Assembly (NCBI RefSeq): GCF_006345805.1
Contig: NW_021828460.1
Coordinates: forward strand, 1 to 8,322
Direction: 5' to 3'
DNA length: 8,322 nucleotides
Source: Octopus sinensis
Lineage: Eukaryota
Shown here: piece after piece, positions 1 through 7,379 of the stretch
Layout of the letters: the number at the start of each line of letters is the position of its first letter
Numbering within the stretch: the first letter of the stretch is position 1
Notes under the pieces: model-generated
The model's database searches: none
Seen by the model: only the letters and a program-made list of their open reading frames with translations
What the model was told of the DNA's origin: nothing
Position numbers and translations under genes: made by a program

Positions 1-104
1 TGAAGGCAAAGTCGACTCGGCGGATTTCGAACTCAGAACGTAAGGCCGGATGAAATGCTGATAAGTGTTTTATCCGGCATAGTAACGATTATTCCAGCTC
101 GCCG
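1..104 (-). mobile_element. tRNA-derived SINE, family A, 5' head (runs off the window edge)
   Basis: The reverse complement aligns (roughly 70% by eye) with the head of the full copy at 6246-6475. B-box GAGTTCGAAATCC lies at 22-34 on the minus strand, followed by the core GTCGACTTTGCCTT. Confidence 0.85.
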
Positions 105-105
105 C

Positions 106-121
106 AATAATAATAATAATA

Positions 122-168
<47 letters not shown>
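106..168. repeat. Compound microsatellite (AAT)6(GAT)15
   Basis: Read directly from the sequence; explains the poly-S/L ORF at 33..236. Confidence 0.98.
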
Positions 169-279
169 AGTGTTTTCTTTAATAACCAATAAGGGCCCAT
201 AAAAACAAACATTGGGGACGGTTCAGAAAAATACAATGTGGGCTACATAAAGATGCATGAGAAAGAGAACAGCAATAAA

Positions 280-1158
280 ATAAATTCCAACAAAAGAGGG
301 AGACTTCTCAGGACTACTCGAAGAAACCCCATAAAACTATGGTCGTCCTGACCCCTAGGGGGAAGTGCCCTCTTCTCATCGTCTTCCTTCAATCTACAGG
401 CGCATGCTTGGATTTGGTCCGTTCACTCAGACCGTTCTTCCCACATACACCCATCTTTCAACAAAATTGCTGGGAAACAGCACTTTTTTCTCCACTTTCA
501 CTTTCCTTTTCAAGTGAAACTTGAAAAAATCTTGACGAGGGTTTGGCCAACTACGAAAGTATCTGATTTCAGCTCTTTCAATCTGGTTCGTCACACAGCT
601 TCTTTCGCTAAAGCCACCAGACAAACACTGCCTGCTCTCCCCGGCCAAAGGAAGGCGGTGGGACGATCTTCAGAATGGACGCAGCCGATCCACCTTACAC
701 TTCACTGCAGGTGTTCGACTCAAACCCACAAATCGAACACCTATTATCACTAGAAGTGCGCTTGCAGAACGGTTACGTCACTCTGTGCTTATCTCGGGTA
801 GGCACGTCTGACAAGCGCTTCCATGACTGAAGACTTTATCTCGAACAGAGAGCCAGCACTACTAAGCTAAAGATTTCTGGAAATTATCTTTCGGCCCCGG
901 TAGGAAAGTCCTCTGGAACAGAACAGCCAGTTGATGCCCAGAGTCTACCCCAAGAAAATCGTCGCTCTTGCCCGCCTCTAAACCTCTTTAGAACGTCTTT
1001 GCTCGACTGCCAGAGGATTGTGAGCGCCAGACAGGTGCCAGGTGCCCTGCTTCTGTCTACGTTTGATCCAGGATTGTGACTCTTTCTAAGAAACGAGCTG
1101 TAGAAAAGCGAATCTGACAAACAGCAATTACACCTGCTCACCGCAAAAGAAACGTTGG
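280..1158. other. Unassigned high-complexity, GC/CpG-richer block (possible exon/UTR, structured RNA or decayed TE)
   Basis: No simple repeats and no match elsewhere in the window. Frame +1 is open 352-750; frame +3 612-1076 has one internal stop (828-830). No protein family recognised. Confidence 0.3.
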
Positions 1159-1224
<66 letters not shown>

Positions 1225-1235
1225 GGTGGTGGTGA

Positions 1236-1275
<40 letters not shown>

Positions 1276-1288
1276 TAGTGTAGTAGTA
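1159..1288. repeat. Compound microsatellite (GTA)n/(GTG)n
   Basis: Read directly; source of the poly-V and poly-Y/H ORFs. Confidence 0.98.
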
Positions 1289-1358
1289 AATTACAATCAG
1301 CGAGAGGTCTATAATTGGCAAAATGACCCTCCCCAAATACTTAGATACGCATGCAGCA

Positions 1359-1392
1359 ACGCGCGCGCACACACAAACGCGCACACACGCAC
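1359..1392. repeat. (CG)n/(CA)n alternating purine-pyrimidine tract
   Basis: ACGCGCGCGCACACACAAACGCGCACACACGCAC. Confidence 0.85.
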
Positions 1393-1579
1393 CCCTCTCA
1401 TAGTTATCAATAAAAGCATTATTGCAATGTATTCATTCACCGATAATGAATTAAGCTACTGTAATTCGAAAATTAACAAATACATGTTTCAACACACGAT
1501 TTCACATCAGGAATCTTGTAAAACATAAGAATTAACTAAGAAAAAACAAATCGAATATTTGTTAGTGGCAAAAAGCGAA

Positions 1580-1739
1580 ATTTAAACTGGAAAAAAGAAA
1601 GACATGAATATTAGTGAATGAGGGGAGTAGAAGAAGTTGAGGAGATAAAGGAAAAAAAACTAGCGAAGAAGAATGAGAAGGAAATGAGTGAGTGACGATA
1701 GAGAACGAGAAAGATAGAGTGGAAGGAGAAAAAGAGAGT

Positions 1740-1819
<80 letters not shown>

Positions 1820-2680
1820 GACAGAGACAGAGGGGGAGAGAGACGAGAATGAAAGTGAGGGAGTGAGAGAGACGGAAGAGAAAGTGAGAATGAGTGAGAG
1901 AGACAGACTAGGGAATGTGAGAGAGACGTGAAAGAGGGAAAGAGAATGAGTGACATGAGGGAAAGTGTGAGAACGAAAAAGTCAGAAAGAAATAGAGACA
2001 GAGGAGGAGAGCCAGAGAGTCAGAGTAAAAGAAAGAAAAAAGAAAGAAAGAAAGAAAGACAAAAGAGAGAGAAAAATTGTGCGATGCAGCAAGGAGGGGA
2101 GGGTACAGATAAGGATACGACAGAGGGGGAGAGATGGAGGATATGGAAGAAGCAGACGATAAAAAGGAAACGATAAAGTAAATAAGTAGAAGTGAGAGGA
2201 AGAGTGAAAGTGTGAGATGGTTAGTGATGAGAGTGATGGTAGAAGTGGTTGTTATGCTTATTGTGATGGTGATGGTGGTGGTGGTTTGGTTGTAGCGGTG
2301 GTGGCGGCGACGTTGGAGTCGGAAAAGAAAACGTAGAAACGAGACGAGAGAGGGAGAGAAGAGGATGAGAAAAAGGAAGTGGAGGTCATTGAAGAACAGA
2401 CGTACGTGAGGAAAAAATAGATAAATAAAGAGTGAGAGGTAGTAGGAGGAAAGGGAGAGAGAGAGAGAGATTGAAGAGAGAAAGAGTGAGAGAGTATGAA
2501 TGCAAAGTGACGGTGCGGTGGTAGAAGAGTAGCAGTAGGAGGAGGAAAGGCTGTGTCAAGTTATGTGGGAAGGACAGCGGCGAAAAAAGAAGTCAGAGAG
2601 AAAGGTGCAAATGAAGGATGGTCAGAGTAAGTAAATATAGAAGAAGAGGGAGGGAGGAAGGGGAGGAAGTAAATGAAAAC
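1580..2680. repeat. Purine-rich low-complexity region with (AG)n core 1743-1809, (GGT)-rich patch ~2262-2310 and (GA)n ~2452-2471
   Basis: The plus strand is overwhelmingly A/G; explains the RE/SL-repeat ORFs at 1660-2176. Confidence 0.92.
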
Positions 2681-2708
2681 TCTAACTATAATACCCGTAA
2701 AAAGACCC

Positions 2709-2739
2709 CACCATCACCACCACAACACCACTCTGACTT

Positions 2740-2770
<31 letters not shown>

Positions 2771-2781
2771 GCTGCTGCTGC
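2709..2781. repeat. Compound microsatellite (CAC)-like, (ACT)10, (GCT)3
   Basis: Read directly; (ACT)10 spans 2741-2770. Confidence 0.95.
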
Positions 2782-2835
2782 AAGGGGAAGACGCAGAGGG
2801 TCAAGAGAATGACCGCAAAAGGAGTTGAAATATAT

Positions 2836-3223
2836 ACTCTTTACTTGTTTCAGTCATTTGACTGCAACCATGCTGGAGCACCGCCTTTAGTCGAGCAAAT
2901 CGACCCCGGGACTTATTCTTTGTAAGCCTAATACTTATTCTATCGGTCTTTTTTTGCCGAACCACTAAGTGACGGGGACGTAAACACACCAGCAATGCTA
3001 GGGGGACAAACACAGACACACAAACACACACGCGCATATATATATATACACATATACGACGGGCTTCTTTCAGTTTCCGTCTACCAAATCCACTCACAAG
3101 GCTTTGGTCAGCCTGAAGCTATAGTAGAAGACACTTGCCCAAGGTGCTATGCAGTGGGACTGAACCCGGAACCATGTGGTTGGTAAGCAAGCTACTTACC
3201 ACACAGCCACTCCTGCGCCTATA
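2836..3223 (-). mobile_element. tRNA-derived SINE, family B, near full length with internal CA/TA microsatellite
   Basis: Minus-strand A-box-like TGGCTGTGTGGTAAG (3195-3209) and B-box GGGTTCAGTCCC (3156-3167). Colinear with the copy at 3401-3844. Confidence 0.9.
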
Positions 3224-3400
3224 CCTTGACGGGTTTTTTAGCAGAGCAAAACCGATGCAATACTTTAAGTCTGGTACTTCACTTATGGTAACAGTCGGTC
3301 ATTTTTGCCGTGATGCTATTACGGGGACGTAAACAAACTGACAACTGTTGACAAGAGGTGGTGGTGGACAAACACAATTACACACACACACACACACCAC
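3224..3400 (-). mobile_element. Diverged family B SINE, 3' half (up to the internal CA repeat)
   Basis: Degenerate matches to 3458-3650 (CCTTGACGGGTTTTTTAG, TTTTTGCCG, TTACGGGGACGTAAACA, GGACAAACAC, then (CA)n). Confidence 0.75.
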
Positions 3401-3623
3401 ATTCTTTTATTCTTTTACTTGTTTCAGTCATTTGACTGCGGCCATACTGGAGCACCGCCTTGAAGGATTTTAGTCGAACAAATCGTCCCCAGGACTTCTT
3501 TTGTTTCCTTTAAAGCCTAGTACTTATTGTGTCGGATCTCTTTTGTTGGACTGTTAAGTTACGGAGACGTAAACACACCAACACTGGTTATCAAGCGTTA
3601 ATGAGGTTCAAACGTAATCACAA

Positions 3624-3663
<40 letters not shown>

Positions 3664-3844
3664 ACACACATATATATATATAATACGACGGGTTTCTTTC
3701 AGTTTCCGTTTACCAAATCCACTCACAAGGATTTTGTCAGGCCGAGGCTATAGTAGAAGACACTTGTCCAAGGTGCCATGCAGTGGGACTGAACCTGGAA
3801 CCATGTTGTTGGGAAGCAACCTTCGTACCACACAGTCACACCTG
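3401..3844 (-). mobile_element. tRNA-derived SINE, family B, full length
   Basis: Colinear with 2836-3223 from the tail TCTTTTACTTGTTTCAGTCATTTGACTGC to the head CCACACAGTCACACCTG; internal (CA)n(TA)n ~3630-3683. Confidence 0.9.
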
Positions 3845-4005
3845 GCTTCTTTTTAGTTTCCGTCAACCAAATCCGCTCAAGATGATCTGGTCGACCCGGA
3901 ACTATAGTGGATGTCACTTACTCAATATGCGGTGAAGTGGGATTGAACCCAAGACGACATAGTTGTGAAGCAAGCTTTTTTACCACGAATCCACGCCTGT
4001 GCGCC
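3845..4005 (-). mobile_element. Diverged family B SINE, 5' half including tRNA head
   Basis: Degenerate match to 3062-3220 (GCTTCTTTTTAGTTTCCGTCAACCAAATCC ... GTGGGATTGAACCC ... TTACCAC ... GTGCGCC). Confidence 0.8.
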
Positions 4006-4050
4006 ACGACGACGACGACCACAACCACCACCAACAACAACAACAATAAC
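4006..4050. repeat. Compound (GAC)n/(CAA)n microsatellite
   Basis: Read directly. Confidence 0.9.
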
Positions 4051-4331: not shown

Positions 4332-4383
4332 GCATGCCATGCTTTTGACAAAATCAATTCCTTCTATGGTTTGTGTTTTCGTG
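4332..4383 (-). mobile_element. 52-bp antisense fragment of the RLE retrotransposon at 5683-6884
   Basis: Matches the reverse complement of 5819-5870 at 50/52 positions; both encode TKTQTIEGIDFVK. Confidence 0.92.
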
Positions 4384-4405
4384 AAGTTTGGTGGAGTAAT
4401 AATCC

Positions 4406-4568
4406 TTTCTGCTAAAGGCTCAAGGCCCTGAAATTTTGGGAAGGGGACTAGTCGATAACATCGACCCCAGCGCTTCACTAGTAATTGATTTATCGACACC
4501 GAAGGGATGTTCGGCAAAGTCGACCTCGGTGGAATTTGAACTCAGAACGTATAGAGGGATAGAATACC
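4406..4568 (-). mobile_element. Family A SINE with an alternative 3' tail, truncated within the tRNA head
   Basis: The core TCGATAACATCGACCCCAG...GGCAAAGTCGACCTCGGTGGAATTTGAACTCAGAACG matches the reverse complement of ~6310-6412. B-box retained (4531-4543), A-box missing; tail differs from 6415-6475. Confidence 0.85.
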
Positions 4569-4632
4569 TATTTCTATTTCTTTACTACCCACAAGGGGCT
4601 AAACACAGGGAGGACAAACCAGGAAAACAAAA
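4569..4632 (-). mobile_element. Family A SINE 3' tail fragment
   Basis: TATTTCTTTACTACCCACAAGGGGCTAAACACAGGGAGGACAAAC matches the reverse complement of 6421-6477; cut off by the (CATA)n array. Confidence 0.85.
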
Positions 4633-4704
4633 CATACATAACATACATACATACATACATACAACATACATACATACATACATACATACGTACGTACATG
4701 CATA
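4633..4704. repeat. (CATA)n array with CGTA/CATG variants at the right end
   Basis: Read directly. Confidence 0.97.
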
Positions 4705-5138
4705 TACCTCAATAAAATGTATGCACAACAGATCTGATATGATGTTTTGGGATAGAGAAAAGAAACTGTGCACAGTTGTGGAAATTAGCTGCCTAGCGGA
4801 TGTTAACGTAAAGCTGAAGTTCAGTGAAAAAGAGAACACCTATGCTGAACTATTGAGAAATCTGCAGTTACTTTATCCAGATTACAAGTTCAGGTTTATA
4901 CCTGTAATTATTGGAGCCCTGGGATATATAATACACTGCTTAAATGCCAATCTTGAGTAATTAGGCTTCTCAACACCAGGAAGGAAAATGTTAATTCGAA
5001 GACTATAGATCCAATCCATCACCGGAACTGCAAAAGTCTGTAAGACTTTCCAGAAGTTTATCATTTAAATATATATGAGCATGTCTAGATATGTAACTAT
5101 ATGAATGAGAATACATATATAAAACGTACAAATCTGCA
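4705..5138 (+). mobile_element. 5'-truncated non-LTR retrotransposon, copy A: C-terminal restriction-like endonuclease plus start of 3' UTR; decayed
   Basis: Frame +2 reads HNRSDMMFWDREKKLCTVVEISCLADVNVKLKFSEKENTYAELLRNLQLLYPDYKFRFIPVIIGALG...LE*LGF...LIRRL*IQSITGTAKVCKTFQKFII*, with premature stops at 4958 and 5006 and the likely natural stop at 5066-5068. The HN(R/K)PD...E(I/L)SC...EK..Y...GALG pattern is typical of R4/Dong-like RLE domains (family knowledge; clade not determinable without the RT). Confidence 0.85.
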
Positions 5139-5274
5139 CATACATACATACATACATACATACATACATACATACATACATACATACATACATACATACA
5201 CATACATACATACATACATACATACACACATACATACATACATACGTACATACATACATACGTACGTACGTACA
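5139..5274. repeat. (CATA)n array ending in (CGTA)n variants
   Basis: Read directly; source of the YIHT/MYVC ORFs. Confidence 0.98.
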
Positions 5275-5276
5275 AA

Positions 5277-5387
5277 CAAAATTACCCTGTTGTTGATGTT
5301 GAAATTCCAAAGAAGGAACCTTGGATCTAGGTTAGAAACCGGTTCTTTCTCTCTTGGCGAGAAATCTTAACATAAACTGAATAATGA
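5277..5387 (+). repeat. ~110-bp unit 1, probably a retroelement 3' terminal segment
   Basis: About 80-85% identical by eye to 5412-5520; ends ...AATAATGA and is followed by degenerate CATA repeats (5388-5411). Confidence 0.75.
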
Positions 5388-5411
5388 CATTCATACATAT
5401 ATACATATATA

Positions 5412-5520
5412 CAAAAATACCCTGTTGTTGCTGAAATTCCAATTAAGGAGCCTTGGGTCTAGGTTAGAAACCCACTCTTTCTCTATTAGCAAGAAATCTT
5501 GAAATAAAACTAAATAATGA
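5412..5520 (+). repeat. ~110-bp unit 2, direct repeat of 5277-5387
   Basis: Shares TACCCTGTTGTTG, GAAATTCCAA, CCTTGG-TCTAGGTTAGAAACC, TCTTTCTCT, GAAATCTT and AATAATGA|CAT with unit 1. Confidence 0.8.
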
Positions 5521-5682
5521 CATACATACATACATACATACATACATACATACATACATGCATGCATACATACATACATACATACATACATACATACATA
5601 CATACATGCATACATGCATACATACATACATACATACATACATACATACATACATACATACATACATACATACATACATACA
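5521..5682. repeat. (CATA)~40 array with a few CATG variants
   Basis: Read directly. Confidence 0.98.
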
Positions 5683-6884
5683 ACTTGAGGAAAGGTTTAA
5701 AATGAGATCTGTGACAGATCTCTTCCTAAGGAGTATTGGTAAGATCTGTTTATCAGAAGAATAAAATAAAAAAAAGAAATAATCTAATTCATTGAGAATG
5801 TAGTAGATGGGTACTTGGCACGAAAACACAAACCATAGAAGGAATTGATTTTGTCAAAGGCTTGGCATGCAGTATCGACAAATTTATGACATACTACTTC
5901 GAAGGTTATATGCATGCAATTCAAGACACAGAGATTCCCACCAAGTAACTACAGCCTAAAAGGCAGAAATCATTGATAGATAACAAATGTAGGCTGTACT
6001 TAACCAAAACTGTAGACACCAAGAACATTATTACCAGCTGCGAGAAAATGCCTTCTAGATATTATCTTTCCTATGAGGTATGATGCGATGGCCAGAACAG
6101 TCTGGAATAGGATAGCAAATAAAGAAAACACCTACGGACCTAGCTGACTATATTGAGACCGATGTGTGAAAAAGAATATTAGTGGAACTTAAAAATCAAA
6201 ACTGTCACCAAGTTAAAACACAACCGGTCAGATATTGTTATGTCGAAGACGGCCAGCTGGCAGAAACGTTAGCACGCCGGGCGAAATGCTTAGCGGTGTT
6301 TCGTCCGCCGCTGCATTCTGGGTTCAAATTCCGCCGAGGTCGACTTTGCCTTTCATCCTTTCGGGGTCGATAAATTAAGTACCAGTTACGCACTGGGGTC
6401 GATGTAATCGACTTCATCCGTTTGTCTGTCTTGTTTGTCCCCTCTATGTTTAGCCCCTTGTGGGTAATAAAGAAACAGATATTGTTACGTCGGACCACAG
6501 GGAAAGAATATCGTTTGTTGTGGAATTAAGCTGCACTCTGGCGGCCAATGTGGTTAGAAAAATACAAGAGAAAGAAGGAATCTATGTACCACTGATAAAG
6601 AGTTTCCAAATACACTTTCAGCTTAATATCTGTTACTATTGGACAATAGGATGCATACCAACCCGTCTGGTGCGAAGTATGGCTGAGCTTGGGTTTTTGG
6701 AGAGAGAACGCAAACCCTTAATTCGTAGTCTACAAATGATTACGATATTTGGGACTATAAAAATCTGCAAGACCTTAAGTTTGCAGGGATGATGAACAAA
6801 ACAAAATGCTATCCTTCACAATCTTGTGCCCAAGTAAACAGGTGGCCGGTTAAAATTTATTCTAAATTAAAAAGAGAAAGAGAA
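5683..6884 (+). mobile_element. 5'-truncated non-LTR retrotransposon, copy B: post-RT region, CCHC knuckle, RLE domain and 3' UTR; pseudogenised and interrupted by a SINE
   Basis: From 5820: QTIEGIDFVKGLACSIDKFMTYYFEGYMHAIQDTEIPTK*...NKCRLYLTKTVDTKNIITSCEKMPSRYYL; frameshift near 6069 to PMRYDAMARTVWN; then EY*WNLKIKTVTKLKHNRSDIV. After the SINE: DHRERISFVVELSC...EKEGIY...LGFLERERKPLIRSLQMITIFGTIKICKTL, stop 6790-6792. EGxxxAIQ, CRxC...H..xC and RHD-like motifs are characteristic of RLE-type elements. Confidence 0.88.
6246..6475 (+). mobile_element. Full-length tRNA-derived SINE, family A, with 17-bp target site duplication
   Basis: A-box-like TGGCAGAAACGTT (6258-6270), B-box GGTTCAAATTCC (6321-6332). 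TSD CAGATATTGTTA(T/C)GTCG at 6229-6245 and 6476-6492, 16/17 identical. Confidence 0.95.
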
Positions 6885-6945
6885 CATACATACATACATA
6901 CATACATACATACATACATACATACATACATACATACATACATAC
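6885..6945. repeat. Perfect (CATA)15 array
   Basis: Read directly. Confidence 0.98.
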
Positions 6946-7336
6946 GTGGTGGTTGCCCCCTCGATATCGAGTATGGCCATTGCACGAAGCTTAATCCATG
7001 TTATCGTGCAATGCCTGTGGAAGATTTTTTTAAAGTGAGGAAAGGCTGTGCACTGAGTCAATCCCACTCACTAAGCAACAGCAGCCATAATCCGAAAAGA
7101 AGAACAAGTCAACATCATCGATAGCCATTGAGCCGCAGGTTTTATGTCGGAGTTATCCCATTTACCTGAGTTACCTTCTCCTAGAAGGATGCCCTAACAA
7201 AGGCTAGGAGTCCCTCACTCCCAATGGTTTAACCGCGTGATCGGGTATTCAGTCCAATTATTTCTATGTCCTCGCGCATGATACAGCCTTAAGACATTTA
7301 TTGGATGGCCGTTGACTCTCAAGAGCTCCTCCGCCC
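6946..7336 (-). mobile_element. Putative non-autonomous RTE-derived element (5' UTR joined to 3' end)
   Basis: The minus strand carries ...GGGACTCCTAGCCTTTGTTAGGGCATCCTTCTAGGAGAAGGTAACTC..., resembling the RTE-clade 5' UTR motif, and ends ...ATACTCGATATCGAGGGGGCAACC followed by (TATG)n, resembling RTE 3' termini. Both resemblances are from memory, not a search. Several perfect hairpins are present. Confidence 0.5.
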
Positions 7337-7379
7337 TACATACATACATATATACATACATACATACATACATACATAC
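7337..7379. repeat. (TACA)n array
   Basis: Read directly; one TATA variant. Confidence 0.97.

Follow-up and report, generated by a model that had tools for sequence, protein, structure and literature searches.

The 8,322-nt stretch of Octopus sinensis DNA analysed here, the window, contains a cluster in which (ACAT)n arrays alternate with fragments of non-LTR retrotransposons. The question raised by this locus is whether these elements home to the ACAT repeat or carry it as a mere 3' tail. Site-specific restriction-like-endonuclease (RLE) retrotransposons, for which R2 serves as the model, are under development as gene-insertion tools, so what sets or changes target choice is a practical question. 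The evidence described below favours the first of these readings. We consider it probable (about 0.7) that a single octopus (ACAT)n array was hit independently three or more times by two divergent families of the Dong clade, each time in the same orientation and with 5' truncation, and that these elements home to ACAT.

ACAT arrays of the window

Six (ACAT)n arrays were found within 4632-7379, all with ACAT on the + strand, as the preliminary description had observed (Table 1). Five of them were recovered by TRF as period-4 arrays. The remaining one, array 3, was detected by TRF at 5393-5413 as a short degenerate tract of ATACATAT units, and its extent was set as given in Table 1. The arrays had been described as confined to the cluster, and this held true: 86 of the 88 ACATACAT 8-mers of the window fall within 4633-7379. 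ATGTATGT showed zero occurrences across the whole window. The window is rich in repeats and possesses SINEs and many other microsatellites.

Table 1. Features of the ACAT cluster and its margins. Positions are those of the window; match is the ungapped match to (ACAT)n.
Feature	Position	Strand	Match	Description
Family B fragment outside cluster	4332-4383 (52 nt)	-		96% inverted copy of coding 5819-5870
Two SINE fragments, left boundary	4395-4568 and 4570-4631	-		80-85% inverted match to SINE 6246-6475
Array 1	4632-4704	+	64%	Degenerate (ACAT)n; TRF
E1, Dong-like family A	4705-5386	+		5'-truncated; tblastn homology from 4706
Array 2	5138-5278	+	74%	Expanded microsatellite within E1 3' UTR, by alignment to O. 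vulgaris paralog; TRF
Array 3	5387-5413	+	89%	Short degenerate tract ACATTCATACATATATACATATATACA
E2, second family A copy	5414-5519	+		Terminal ~108-nt 3' UTR module only
Array 4	5520-5682	+	98%	(ACAT)~40, purity 96-98%; TRF
E3, Dong-like family B	5683-6883	+		5'-truncated in linker; tblastn and profile alignments
SINE within E3	6246-6475 (230 nt)	+		Later insertion; target-site duplications 6229-6245 and 6476-6492
Array 5	6884-6945	+	100%	Perfect (ACAT)15.5, directly 3' of E3; TRF
Insert 5	6946-7336	unassigned		Between arrays 5 and 6; includes 71-nt octopus interspersed-repeat piece
Array 6	7337-7379	+	98%	(TACA)~11, microsatellite right end; non-repetitive DNA beyond; TRF

Dong-like copies in the cluster

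E1 retains the last ~118 codons of the RLE domain with two in-frame stops and keeps the entire 3' UTR, whose terminus is ...AATAATG. Its coding homology, detected by tblastn, extends from 2 nt past array 1 to about 5059. To understand the position of array 2, E1 was aligned to an O. vulgaris paralog (L001 10150-10577). The two are 88-91% identical and colinear across array 2, where the paralog possesses only about (ACAT)4-5 and a degenerate tract, with both flanks matching E1. In the paralog, the sequence of insert 1 passes via a short (ACAT)n directly into that of insert 2; 4705-5386 is therefore one element, and array 2 is internal to the E1 3' UTR and marks no insertion boundary. The internal tract of family A measures about 20 nt in O. 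vulgaris against 141 nt in the window, a growth which indicates strong slippage.

E2 is cut off inside this internal array of family A. Its module (insert 3) is 82-85% identical to 5279-5386, the corresponding module of E1, and array 3 between them is at once the E1 3' flank and the remnant of the E2 internal array. The E1 module is 90.7% identical to the O. vulgaris paralog and the E2 module 82.6%. The E1 module is thus nearer to the paralog, which favours a probable origin of E2 by independent insertion over local duplication. Folding of the 108-nt module gave no support for a structured element (RNAalifold covariation term about 0; single-sequence z-score -1.36). Metagenome scans for this module and for relatives of P0002, a protein related to family A, gave zero matches.

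In E3, the CCHC knuckle is degenerate, the RLE domain is interrupted by several stops and one or more frameshifts, and the 3' UTR measures 91 nt. Coding homology of family B was found from about 5782-5814 to 6777 by tblastn and profile alignments. The SINE within E3 is flanked by a 17-nt target-site duplication, CAGATATTGTTAYGTCG, and the frame of E3 is restored across ...NRSDIVMS / DHRER... when the SINE and one duplicate are deleted. The SINE orientation was assigned by means of a B-box-like motif, GGTTCAAATTCC, which this copy carries on its + strand. All Dong copies in the window are dead, as they carry stop codons, a frameshift and the SINE insertion.

The preliminary description had noted two divergent RLE fragments in the same orientation, each beginning right after an array. 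The first part stands: both fragments are on the + strand, their peptides are 36% identical and their 3' UTRs gave no alignment to each other. The second part is true for E1; in E3, no coding homology was detected in about 100 nt after array 4 (5683-5781). The count of five retroelement inserts had to be given up, because array 2 lies inside a single element, insert 3 only repeats the terminal ~108 nt of inserts 1 and 2, and insert 5 could not be recognised as a retroelement. The cluster is instead composed of three Dong insertions, two of family A and one of family B, along with one piece of other sequence.

Domain organization and clade of the elements

The closest proteins were hypothetical proteins of O. 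vulgaris and O. bimaculoides. The window peptides retrieved 5 and 2 relatives in word-indexed protein searches, and an alignment query retrieved 91. Just 2 of these 91 are annotated octopus proteins, so octopus copies stayed scarce. Look-ups of P0208 and P0205 returned one same locus from many Tara samples and no independent insertions.

The long relatives possess RVT_1 and zf-RVT followed by a C-terminal domain of the window type. RVT_1 (E 1e-20 to 1e-29) was found upstream of this domain in P0012, P0067, P0078, P0120 and P0233; the RT thus lies in the same ORF in the relatives, and the window copies are truncated 3' of it. In family B, a degenerate NKCRLY..(N)IITSC aligned to the profile CRLC..EDxxHxxxxC of the CCHC knuckle. 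The relatives match zf-RVT, and their CCHC aligns to R2. The window peptides retain ...(R)SD...VVE(I/L)SC...EK.... The C-terminal domain of P0002, which is 65% identical to the family A peptide, was modelled by AlphaFold (pLDDT 87), and the top PDB matches of the model were the RLE domains of R2 (9nl2_A, 9dou_A and 9nl3_A; TM 0.71-0.73, E about 1e-5), followed by other PD-(D/E)XK nucleases. As judged from this predicted fold, both coding fragments are C-terminal remains of non-LTR retrotransposons with a PD-(D/E)XK RLE.

Clade membership was scored by BLASTP against 11 reference sequences from PMC5678591. The relatives gave 237-358 bits with Dong, 157-248 bits with R4 and at most 176 bits with R2, R8, NeSL, Utopia, HERO and CRE. 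Similarly, the linker peptide of family B from the window itself gave 73.9 bits with Dong_Bm against at most 25 with other clades. By these scores, the window elements are assigned to the Dong / R4 clade. Membership of HERO was considered since some HERO families are microsatellite-specific, and it was rejected at no more than 112 bits, against more than 300 for Dong.

No N-terminal Pfam domain was detected in P0233, P0078 and P0120; published detection of the divergent N-terminal Myb/SANT-like domain of the Dong / R4 clade took profile-profile search (PMC7998251). Rfam scans at E <= 0.1 of L005, which includes two roughly full-length relatives, L011 and L013 returned no ribozyme of the HDV-like or any other type; HDV-like ribozymes are often missed by family models. 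No R2 3' UTR element was found in the Rfam scan at the same threshold. Matches of mir-297 type inside the arrays were all under the gathering score and were rejected as low-complexity artefacts.

Comparison with known target-specific elements

R4/Dong elements insert into rDNA or microsatellites, Dong into (TAA)n (PMC7998251, PMC3812793). Dong of Bombyx mori, along with DongAg and DongBg, was the best-scoring reference over the RT and linker. Like Dong, the elements described here have a single ORF with RT, CCHC knuckle and C-terminal RLE, the RT being seen in the relatives, and their insertions in a simple repeat share one orientation and build same-strand nests. One relative in L032 is flanked by (ATA)n/(AAT)n, like Dong. 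They differ from Dong in their repeat partner, which is the tetranucleotide (ACAT)n. Dong has an HDV-like self-cleaving ribozyme at its 5' end (PMC3774820); none was found in the relatives scanned with Rfam, and the window copies are without 5' ends. R4 of Ascaris and other nematodes, the second-best reference, is of the same clade and has an RLE nuclease, but it targets a specific site of the 28S rDNA and no microsatellite.

Waldo (WaldoAg1/2, WaldoFs1) of the R1 clade has essentially the same target repeat, (ACAY)n (PMC3812793). Its nuclease is an N-terminal APE type and its clade is unrelated, whereas the elements here have the C-terminal PD-(D/E)XK RLE. Neither the N-terminal APE nor the R1-clade RT of Waldo was found, the RT being nearest to Dong, R4 and R2, and the common ACAT target is a convergence and not a sign of relatedness. 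R2 (8gh6, 9dou, 9nl2) provides the nearest solved structures for the RT (E 1e-24) as well as the RLE, but it belongs to another clade, possesses N-terminal zinc fingers and a Myb domain, and has one target only, in the 28S rDNA. Other microsatellite-targeting RLE lineages are Togen, NeSL-related fish elements specific for (TG)n, and some HERO families (PMC4640811). These belong to other clades and use other motifs, and the HERO and NeSL references score far under Dong. Full-text searches of the literature turned up no RLE element described as targeting ACAT, an earlier description in Repbase Reports or Kojima & Fujiwara 2004 being possible. As Dong/R4 is already known for microsatellite targeting by (TAA)n, what is new is the motif and not the principle, which suggests a new target specificity inside a clade with known microsatellite targeting.

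Array junctions in octopus copies and in relatives

The octopus DNA compared comprised the 20-kb O. vulgaris locus L001 and three Logan contigs of ~1.5 kb, and an orthologous site with an empty, unbroken array was not seen. An ACAT-type array stands directly at the 5' junction in all four readable octopus copies (three in the window, one in O. vulgaris), and the truncation points differ among the array-adjoining copies. The copy in L001 is truncated at a codon different from that of E1. It lies directly 3' of a ~90-nt (CCAT)n(ACAT)n array and has on its 3' side just ACTGACATATATAT, a degenerate tract of ~14 nt. In the window as well as in O. vulgaris, the first array from the left is preceded by no Dong element, and opposite-orientation SINE sequence was found upstream of it. 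About 20 kb of L001 and the other 5.6 kb of the window contain no further ACAT array.

In L005, an unrelated invertebrate locus from another host, five or more Dong-like copies lie on one strand, each with perfect (ACAT)n at its borders. For three of these the truncation falls at amino acid 598, 469 or 965, and coding sequence begins 3-10 nt past the perfect (ACAT)n; two further copies are roughly full-length and directly 3' of an array. In L029, a family-B-like contig, (ATAC)5 was found directly after a 137-nt 3' UTR. A repeat on both sides in fixed orientation was thus found in a small sample, of four octopus copies and at least five in L005. Neither (TAA)n nor 28S rDNA was found as the target, the flanks being (ACAT)n in the window, L001, L005 and L029, and no TAA array lies beside any window copy. 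Sister families showed (TTAC)n on both sides in L011, L013 and L032, and (TGAC)n and (GACTGACC)n lie directly 5' of truncated sister copies in L032 and L010.

Proposed homing to ACAT and alternative explanations

In one alternative, (ACAT)n is an element-borne 3' tail or an internal slippage microsatellite, the elements do not seek out ACAT when they insert, and the cluster arose by chance or from a general neighbourhood preference. ACAT adjoins the end of every copy, the internal tract of family A has slipped strongly, and short tandem repeats are found at the ends of many non-LTR elements, the reported octopus RTE element (PMC9115989) among them. As ACAT stands at or near the 3' end of every element and also inside family A, a 5' array within the cluster is indistinguishable from the tail of the previous element. 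Array 1 is preceded by a minus-strand SINE and is therefore no tail of an upstream Dong copy; it is the leftover upstream portion of the target microsatellite. The array of L001 likewise stands 5' of the first element. The preliminary description had considered a 3' tail made by slippage only, and the L001 copy shows the reverse pattern, with a long array 5' and almost none 3'. Moreover, at least ten insertions in three loci share one orientation relative to the array, and three elements of two families as distant as A and B within 2.7 kb are not expected of random insertion. This explanation is therefore unlikely.

That ACAT arrays multiplied and shuffled one or two insertions, through unequal crossing-over among them or through replication slippage, is still less probable. 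TRF reported a 132-nt period over 5252-5553, and L005 contains a tandem duplication of 1.27 kb at 99.7% identity (14464-15733 against 15745-17014), so part of the repetition in such nests is duplication and not insertion. Against this, the families of E1 and E3 are too distant, all truncation points are different, and the two 108-nt modules are less alike than the first is to its O. vulgaris paralog, which sits at a different locus. This means that the E1 and E2 modules are not each other's closest relatives. Passive accumulation, in which broad insertion is followed by preferential survival in or near DNA that is rich in microsatellites and recombines little, the process suggested for Waldo-A/B of Drosophila close to CA repeats (PMC3812793), agrees with the repeat richness of the window but is very improbable, because the (ATG)n, (AGT)n, (AG)n, (CA)n, (TAC)n and (TA)n microsatellites of the window carry no Dong fragment (TRF, tblastn), junctions are precise to a few nucleotides and orientation is uniform.

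Homing to ACAT is the preferred reading, and the earlier proposal that at least two divergent RLE lineages repeatedly struck one (ACAT)n array was supported, with all tests run in agreement. Target-primed reverse transcription, as in R2, is the model mechanism. By analogy with R2 and Dong, we infer the nicking specificity, the pairing of RNA tail with target and the order of events as follows. The element protein would recognise the (ACAT)n duplex in one orientation, the C-terminal PD-(D/E)XK nuclease would nick one strand, and the freed 3'-OH would prime reverse transcription of the element RNA, whose terminus ...AAUAAUG with ACAU repeats could pair with the nicked target. Frequent early halt of reverse transcription would produce the differing truncation points. 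The new 5' end would then be joined within the repeat, for E2 inside the element's own internal ACAT tract, and slippage may lengthen or shorten the arrays to create fresh targets.

Repeat motifs in the Dong clade and their implications

The ACAT association was found in at least three separate branches, namely octopus family A, octopus family B and the L005 group, and L032 holds three repeat specificities inside 12 kb of one genome. It is conceivable, at somewhat less than even odds in our view, that the Dong clade is a radiation of microsatellite-homing elements with repeated motif switches among TAA, ACAT, TTAC, TGAC and GACTGACC. Close relatives homing to different simple repeats would offer natural comparisons for mapping target determinants, for example the Myb-like domain at the N-terminus, the RLE domain and the 3' tail of the RNA. 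Should motif recognition depend in part on pairing of the repeat-bearing RNA 3' end with the nicked target, the elements would form a natural series of RLE integrases with altered targets.

Among the LINE groups of O. vulgaris, Dong-R4 is reported to have the most recently active insertions, with 1129 insertions and 4.7 Mb (PMC13282606), and an earlier short-read survey of O. bimaculoides reported no new Dong insertions (PMC9115989). Microsatellite homing could explain such under-detection by short reads. If true, it would mean that the abundant, recently active Dong-R4 LINEs of octopus use ACAT arrays as safe landing pads, largely overlooked by short-read insertion callers, and it would explain their proliferation with little gene damage. 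For microsatellite marker design, octopus ACAT loci may often be interrupted by Dong elements.

Sequences at the cluster margins

The SINE fragments at the left boundary contain no Dong sequence. ARAGORN scans of the window and of four loci were negative for tRNAs. Insert 5 showed no Pfam match in six frames, no coding signal and no match to the Dong relatives. By analogy with family A it was considered as the distal 3' UTR of E3, and this was rejected since the relative in L029 ends at (ATAC)n after its short 3' UTR. The repeat piece of insert 5 was a further ground for rejection, as it is shared with an unrelated O. vulgaris site in opposite orientation, matching L001 10982-11052 on the opposite strand with 76% identity over 71 nt.

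ACAT arrays and coding inserts

Tandem repeats of the window were analyzed by TRF and all the period-4 arrays of the cluster were found to carry ACAT on the plus strand. Of the 88 ACATACAT words counted in the window, 86 lie in 4633-7379; ATGTATGT has zero occurrences in the whole window. The (ATG)n, (AGT)n, (AG)n, (CA)n, (TAC)n and (TA)n microsatellites identified by TRF are all situated outside the cluster. Both analyses confirmed the alternation of ACAT/CATA arrays with five inserts given in the preliminary description. The Rfam mir-297 model also matched the minus strand of the arrays (5555-5623 and others) with at most 65.7 bits, below the gathering score of 90; such a match is a low-complexity artefact which could mislead automated annotation.

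Features of the ACAT cluster (window coordinates)
Feature	Position	ACAT strand	Source or remark
Array 1, period 4	4632-4704	+	TRF
E1, family A (single element)	4705-5386		inserts 1 and 2 with array 2 between them
Array 2, period 4	5138-5278	+	TRF
Array 3, short degenerate tract	5393-5413	+	TRF
E2, family A (insert 3)	5414-5519		
Array 4, period 4	5520-5682	+	TRF
E3, family B (insert 4)	5683-6883		3' end at 6883
SINE within insert 4	6246-6475		
Array 5, period 4	6884-6945	+	TRF
Insert 5	6946-7336		
Array 6, period 4	7337-7379	+	TRF

In insert 1, a single frame with two stops encodes the C-terminal ~118 residues of a protein, and homology to relatives starts at 4706, 2 nt past array 1. Insert 4 codes for this C-terminal domain too, along with a linker and a degenerate CCHC knuckle. 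Its profile homology begins at about 5782-5814, extends to 6777 and is broken by several stops and one or more frameshifts; no homology was detectable in the first ~100 nt of E3. The SINE of 230 nt which interrupts it is bounded by a 17-nt duplication, CAGATATTGTTAYGTCG. No coding signal was found in insert 5. The peptides of inserts 1 and 4 show 36% identity, in line with the clear divergence previously noted for the two restriction-like endonuclease (RLE) proteins. Hypothetical proteins of Octopus vulgaris (83% identity) and O. bimaculoides (74%) are nearest to the insert 1 fragment, and an exhaustive HMMER search revealed 501 relatives of its peptide. In the long relatives, RVT_1 and zf-RVT precede the shared C-terminal domain. 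This domain was modelled by AlphaFold using a relative 65% identical to the window peptide (P0002) along with a 46-sequence alignment (pLDDT 87, pTM 0.81). The top PDB matches of the model were the RLE domains of R2 proteins 9nl2, 9dou and 9nl3 (TM 0.71-0.73, E about 1e-5), and other PD-(D/E)XK nucleases came next. The solved structures nearest in sequence to the reverse transcriptase of the relatives are also R2 proteins (E 1e-24). The nuclease 'PD' motif reads N-R-S-D in both window families (4712-4723 and 6219-6230) against N-R-P-D in relatives, an identical Pro-to-Ser change in families only 36% identical to each other.

Clade assignment

Reference RT/linker sequences of R2, R8, R4, Dong, HERO, NeSL, Utopia and CRE came from an alignment in the supplement of Mahbub et al. 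2017 (PMC5678591) and were compared by BLASTP. The long relatives scored 237-358 bits with Dong of B. mori and A. aegypti, 157-248 bits with R4, and at most 176 bits with R2, R8, NeSL, Utopia, HERO and CRE. Similarly, the family B linker peptide of the window scored 73.9 bits with Dong and at most 25 with any other reference. As Dong gave the best score in both cases, the window elements are classified by sequence as Dong-like, within the R4 clade. Such an assignment fits the 'Dong' or 'Dong-R4' LINEs listed in octopus repeat annotations (PMC9115989, PMC13282606).

Revised anatomy of the cluster

A family A paralog in O. vulgaris (locus L001, 20 kb of OX597824.1; 10150-10577) is colinear with window 4980-5386 at 88-91% identity. 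In this paralog the ORF end is followed by a short (ACAT)4-5 with a degenerate tract and then by the insert 2 sequence, uninterrupted. As the colinear paralog crosses the position of array 2, this array is an internal 3' UTR microsatellite of E1 expanded to 141 nt, and inserts 1 and 2 belong to a single element. The true 3' end of E1 is ...AATAATG, followed by ACAT repeats. E2 contains only the terminal ~108 nt of family A with a remnant of the internal tract ahead. The 108-nt modules of E2 and E1 show 82-85% identity, and that of E1 shows 90.7% with the O. vulgaris paralog. An independent insertion truncated inside the internal repeat is more likely for E2 than a local duplication. E3 ends at 6883, just before array 5; in a family-B-like contig from another sample (L029), the 3' UTR is likewise short (137 nt) and directly followed by (ATAC)5. 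The end of this ENA contig after (ATAC)5 (1022-1114) is Nextera adapter (CTGTCTCTTATACACATCT…) with poly-G, an untrimmed adapter left in a public assembly which breaks within the microsatellite. Insert 5 has 71 nt in common (76%, opposite orientation) with an unrelated site in L001.

With array 2 internal, E2 separate, E3 ending at its array and insert 5 devoid of coding signal, the cluster represents three Dong insertions of two families, along with the insert 5 piece and a later SINE. Thus, the view of all five inserts as retroelements holds for the three Dong insertions and not for inserts 1 and 2 as separate units or for insert 5. The RLE fragments were also described as running from array to array; E1 coding does begin 2 nt after array 1, but array 2 is no boundary. 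In a longer family-A-like copy from another sequencing project (Logan SRR11869384/90/91; 74% nucleotide identity), an octopus-type SINE cuts the 3' UTR directly after the ORF, so SINE insertion into these elements recurs.

ACAT repeats as target or tail

If ACAT were only the 3' tail of the element, a long array would be expected on the 3' side. Among the four octopus Dong-like copies compared, the O. vulgaris copy shows the opposite, with a ~90-nt (CCAT)n(ACAT)n array directly 5' and only ACTGACATATATAT on the 3' side. Its truncation codon differs from those of the window copies (…SENENTYAELL). Inside a nest, a 5' array is indistinguishable from the tail of the preceding element. Array 1 and the array upstream of the L001 copy have no Dong 3' end as left neighbour, both being preceded by SINE sequence in opposite orientation.

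A 20 kb part of a 2.97-Mb ENA contig from an unrelated invertebrate host (L005) contains nine perfect (ACAT)n arrays, all on the same strand. Three Dong-like copies in it have their truncation at amino acids 598, 469 and 965, with coding starting 3-10 nt past an array, and two more, roughly full-length, each directly follow an array; a further apparent copy was left out of this count as a 99.7% tandem duplication. The sense strand is the ACAT strand in all of the at least 10 insertions. Sister families are flanked by other motifs: (TTAC)n on both sides in loci L011, L013 and L032, (ACTG/TGAC)n stopping 8 nt short of an L032 copy whose truncation is at amino acid 1021, and, in L010, (GACTGACC)42 that continues into a copy with its truncation at amino acid 891. 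The third L032 family has (ATA)14 on one side and (AAT)11 on the other, which is the repeat classically targeted by Dong. The 5' arrays, the L005 nest, the uniform orientation and the sister motifs together favour (ACAT)n as insertion target over the mere 3' tail considered in the preliminary description. The octopus copies number only four, and an empty site was not encountered. Repeated hits on an ACAT array by at least two RLE lineages, as proposed there, are supported with a corrected anatomy, families A and B both being Dong-like.

By neighbour-joining on the RLE domain (~120 residues), octopus families A and B and the ACAT group of L005 formed three separate branches, and the TTAC- and GACTGACC-flanked families were positioned between them. 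The tree is weakly resolved and the separate ACAT branches are only a lead.

About 13 kb of one genome (L032, 6484-19828) hold three Dong-like families, each with a different flanking microsatellite, a ~1.6-kb (TGAC)n array, (TTAC)n or (ATA)n/(AAT)n. The 3' UTR ends just before the arrays in two L005 copies (9305-9364 and 17500-17555), 87% identical, resemble an antisense tRNA 5' half (…ggtagagcatcagactgcagatccatgggtcgctggtt, other strand); ARAGORN made no tRNA call there. Upstream of the (GACTGACC)n-flanked Dong fragment, L008-L010 1-7600 holds a minus-strand gene cluster with a Pox_A32/ATPase_2-type packaging ATPase, which may indicate that the host carries a Polinton-like or virus-like element.

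Possible mechanism and comparison with known elements

By analogy with R2 and Dong, a protein of ~1100 residues would be supplied by a master copy outside the window (the relatives P0233, P0078 and P0120 have 1085-1139 residues). It would bind its own 3' UTR and recognise (ACAT)n in one orientation, the likely DNA reader being a putative N-terminal Myb/SANT-like domain, as published for R4/Dong elements (PMC7998251). The RLE would nick one strand, and the 3'-OH would prime reverse transcription. The end of the element overlaps with the array (…AATAATG|ACATACAT), so the RNA probably carries ACAU repeats pairing with the nicked target. Early termination could produce the truncated copies, and joining within the repeat the exact-looking junctions. 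A 5' ribozyme is known in Dong (PMC3774820); the full-length relatives gave no Rfam match for it.

Known microsatellite targets are ACAY for Waldo, AC for Mino, TC for Kibi, TTC for Koshi, TAA for Dong and TG for Togen, and some HERO families are also listed as microsatellite-targeting (PMC3812793, PMC4640811). PMC7998251 gives (TAA)n as the Dong target in most insects, molluscs and cnidarians. Homing of a Dong-clade element to a simple repeat is therefore already known. The literature searched contained no ACAT, TTAC or TGAC partner of an RLE element, as the preliminary description had supposed for ACAT, and an earlier note in Repbase Reports or Kojima & Fujiwara 2004 may exist. So far as found in that literature, ACAT as a Dong-clade target is new, along with the apparent breadth of motif switching within the clade.

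Surroundings of the cluster

The SINEs flanking the cluster are also present in an O. vulgaris locus. Together with the octopus proteins nearest to insert 1, they identify the window as octopus DNA. The left edge of an ACAT-type array meets the 5' side of a minus-strand SINE fragment both in the window (4570-4631) and in L001 (10010-10065), which may be a coincidence or a recurrent junction type. An inverted 52-nt copy (96%) of family B coding 5819-5870 lies at 4332-4383 (minus), 250 nt left of the cluster and separated from it by a pair of SINE fragments. It may be what is left of a further family B copy or of an inversion during insertion. Window 1-4050 is dense in SINEs, and the copies at 2840-3215, 3414-3844 and 3845-4000 have internal (CA)n/(TA)n microsatellites. 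A SINE fragment also occupies 1-104, with (AAT)n(ATG)n after it. A purine-rich low-complexity block of 1.1 kb (about 1560-2700) is situated between inverted (AGT)n 1159-1288 and (TAC)n 2740-2783.
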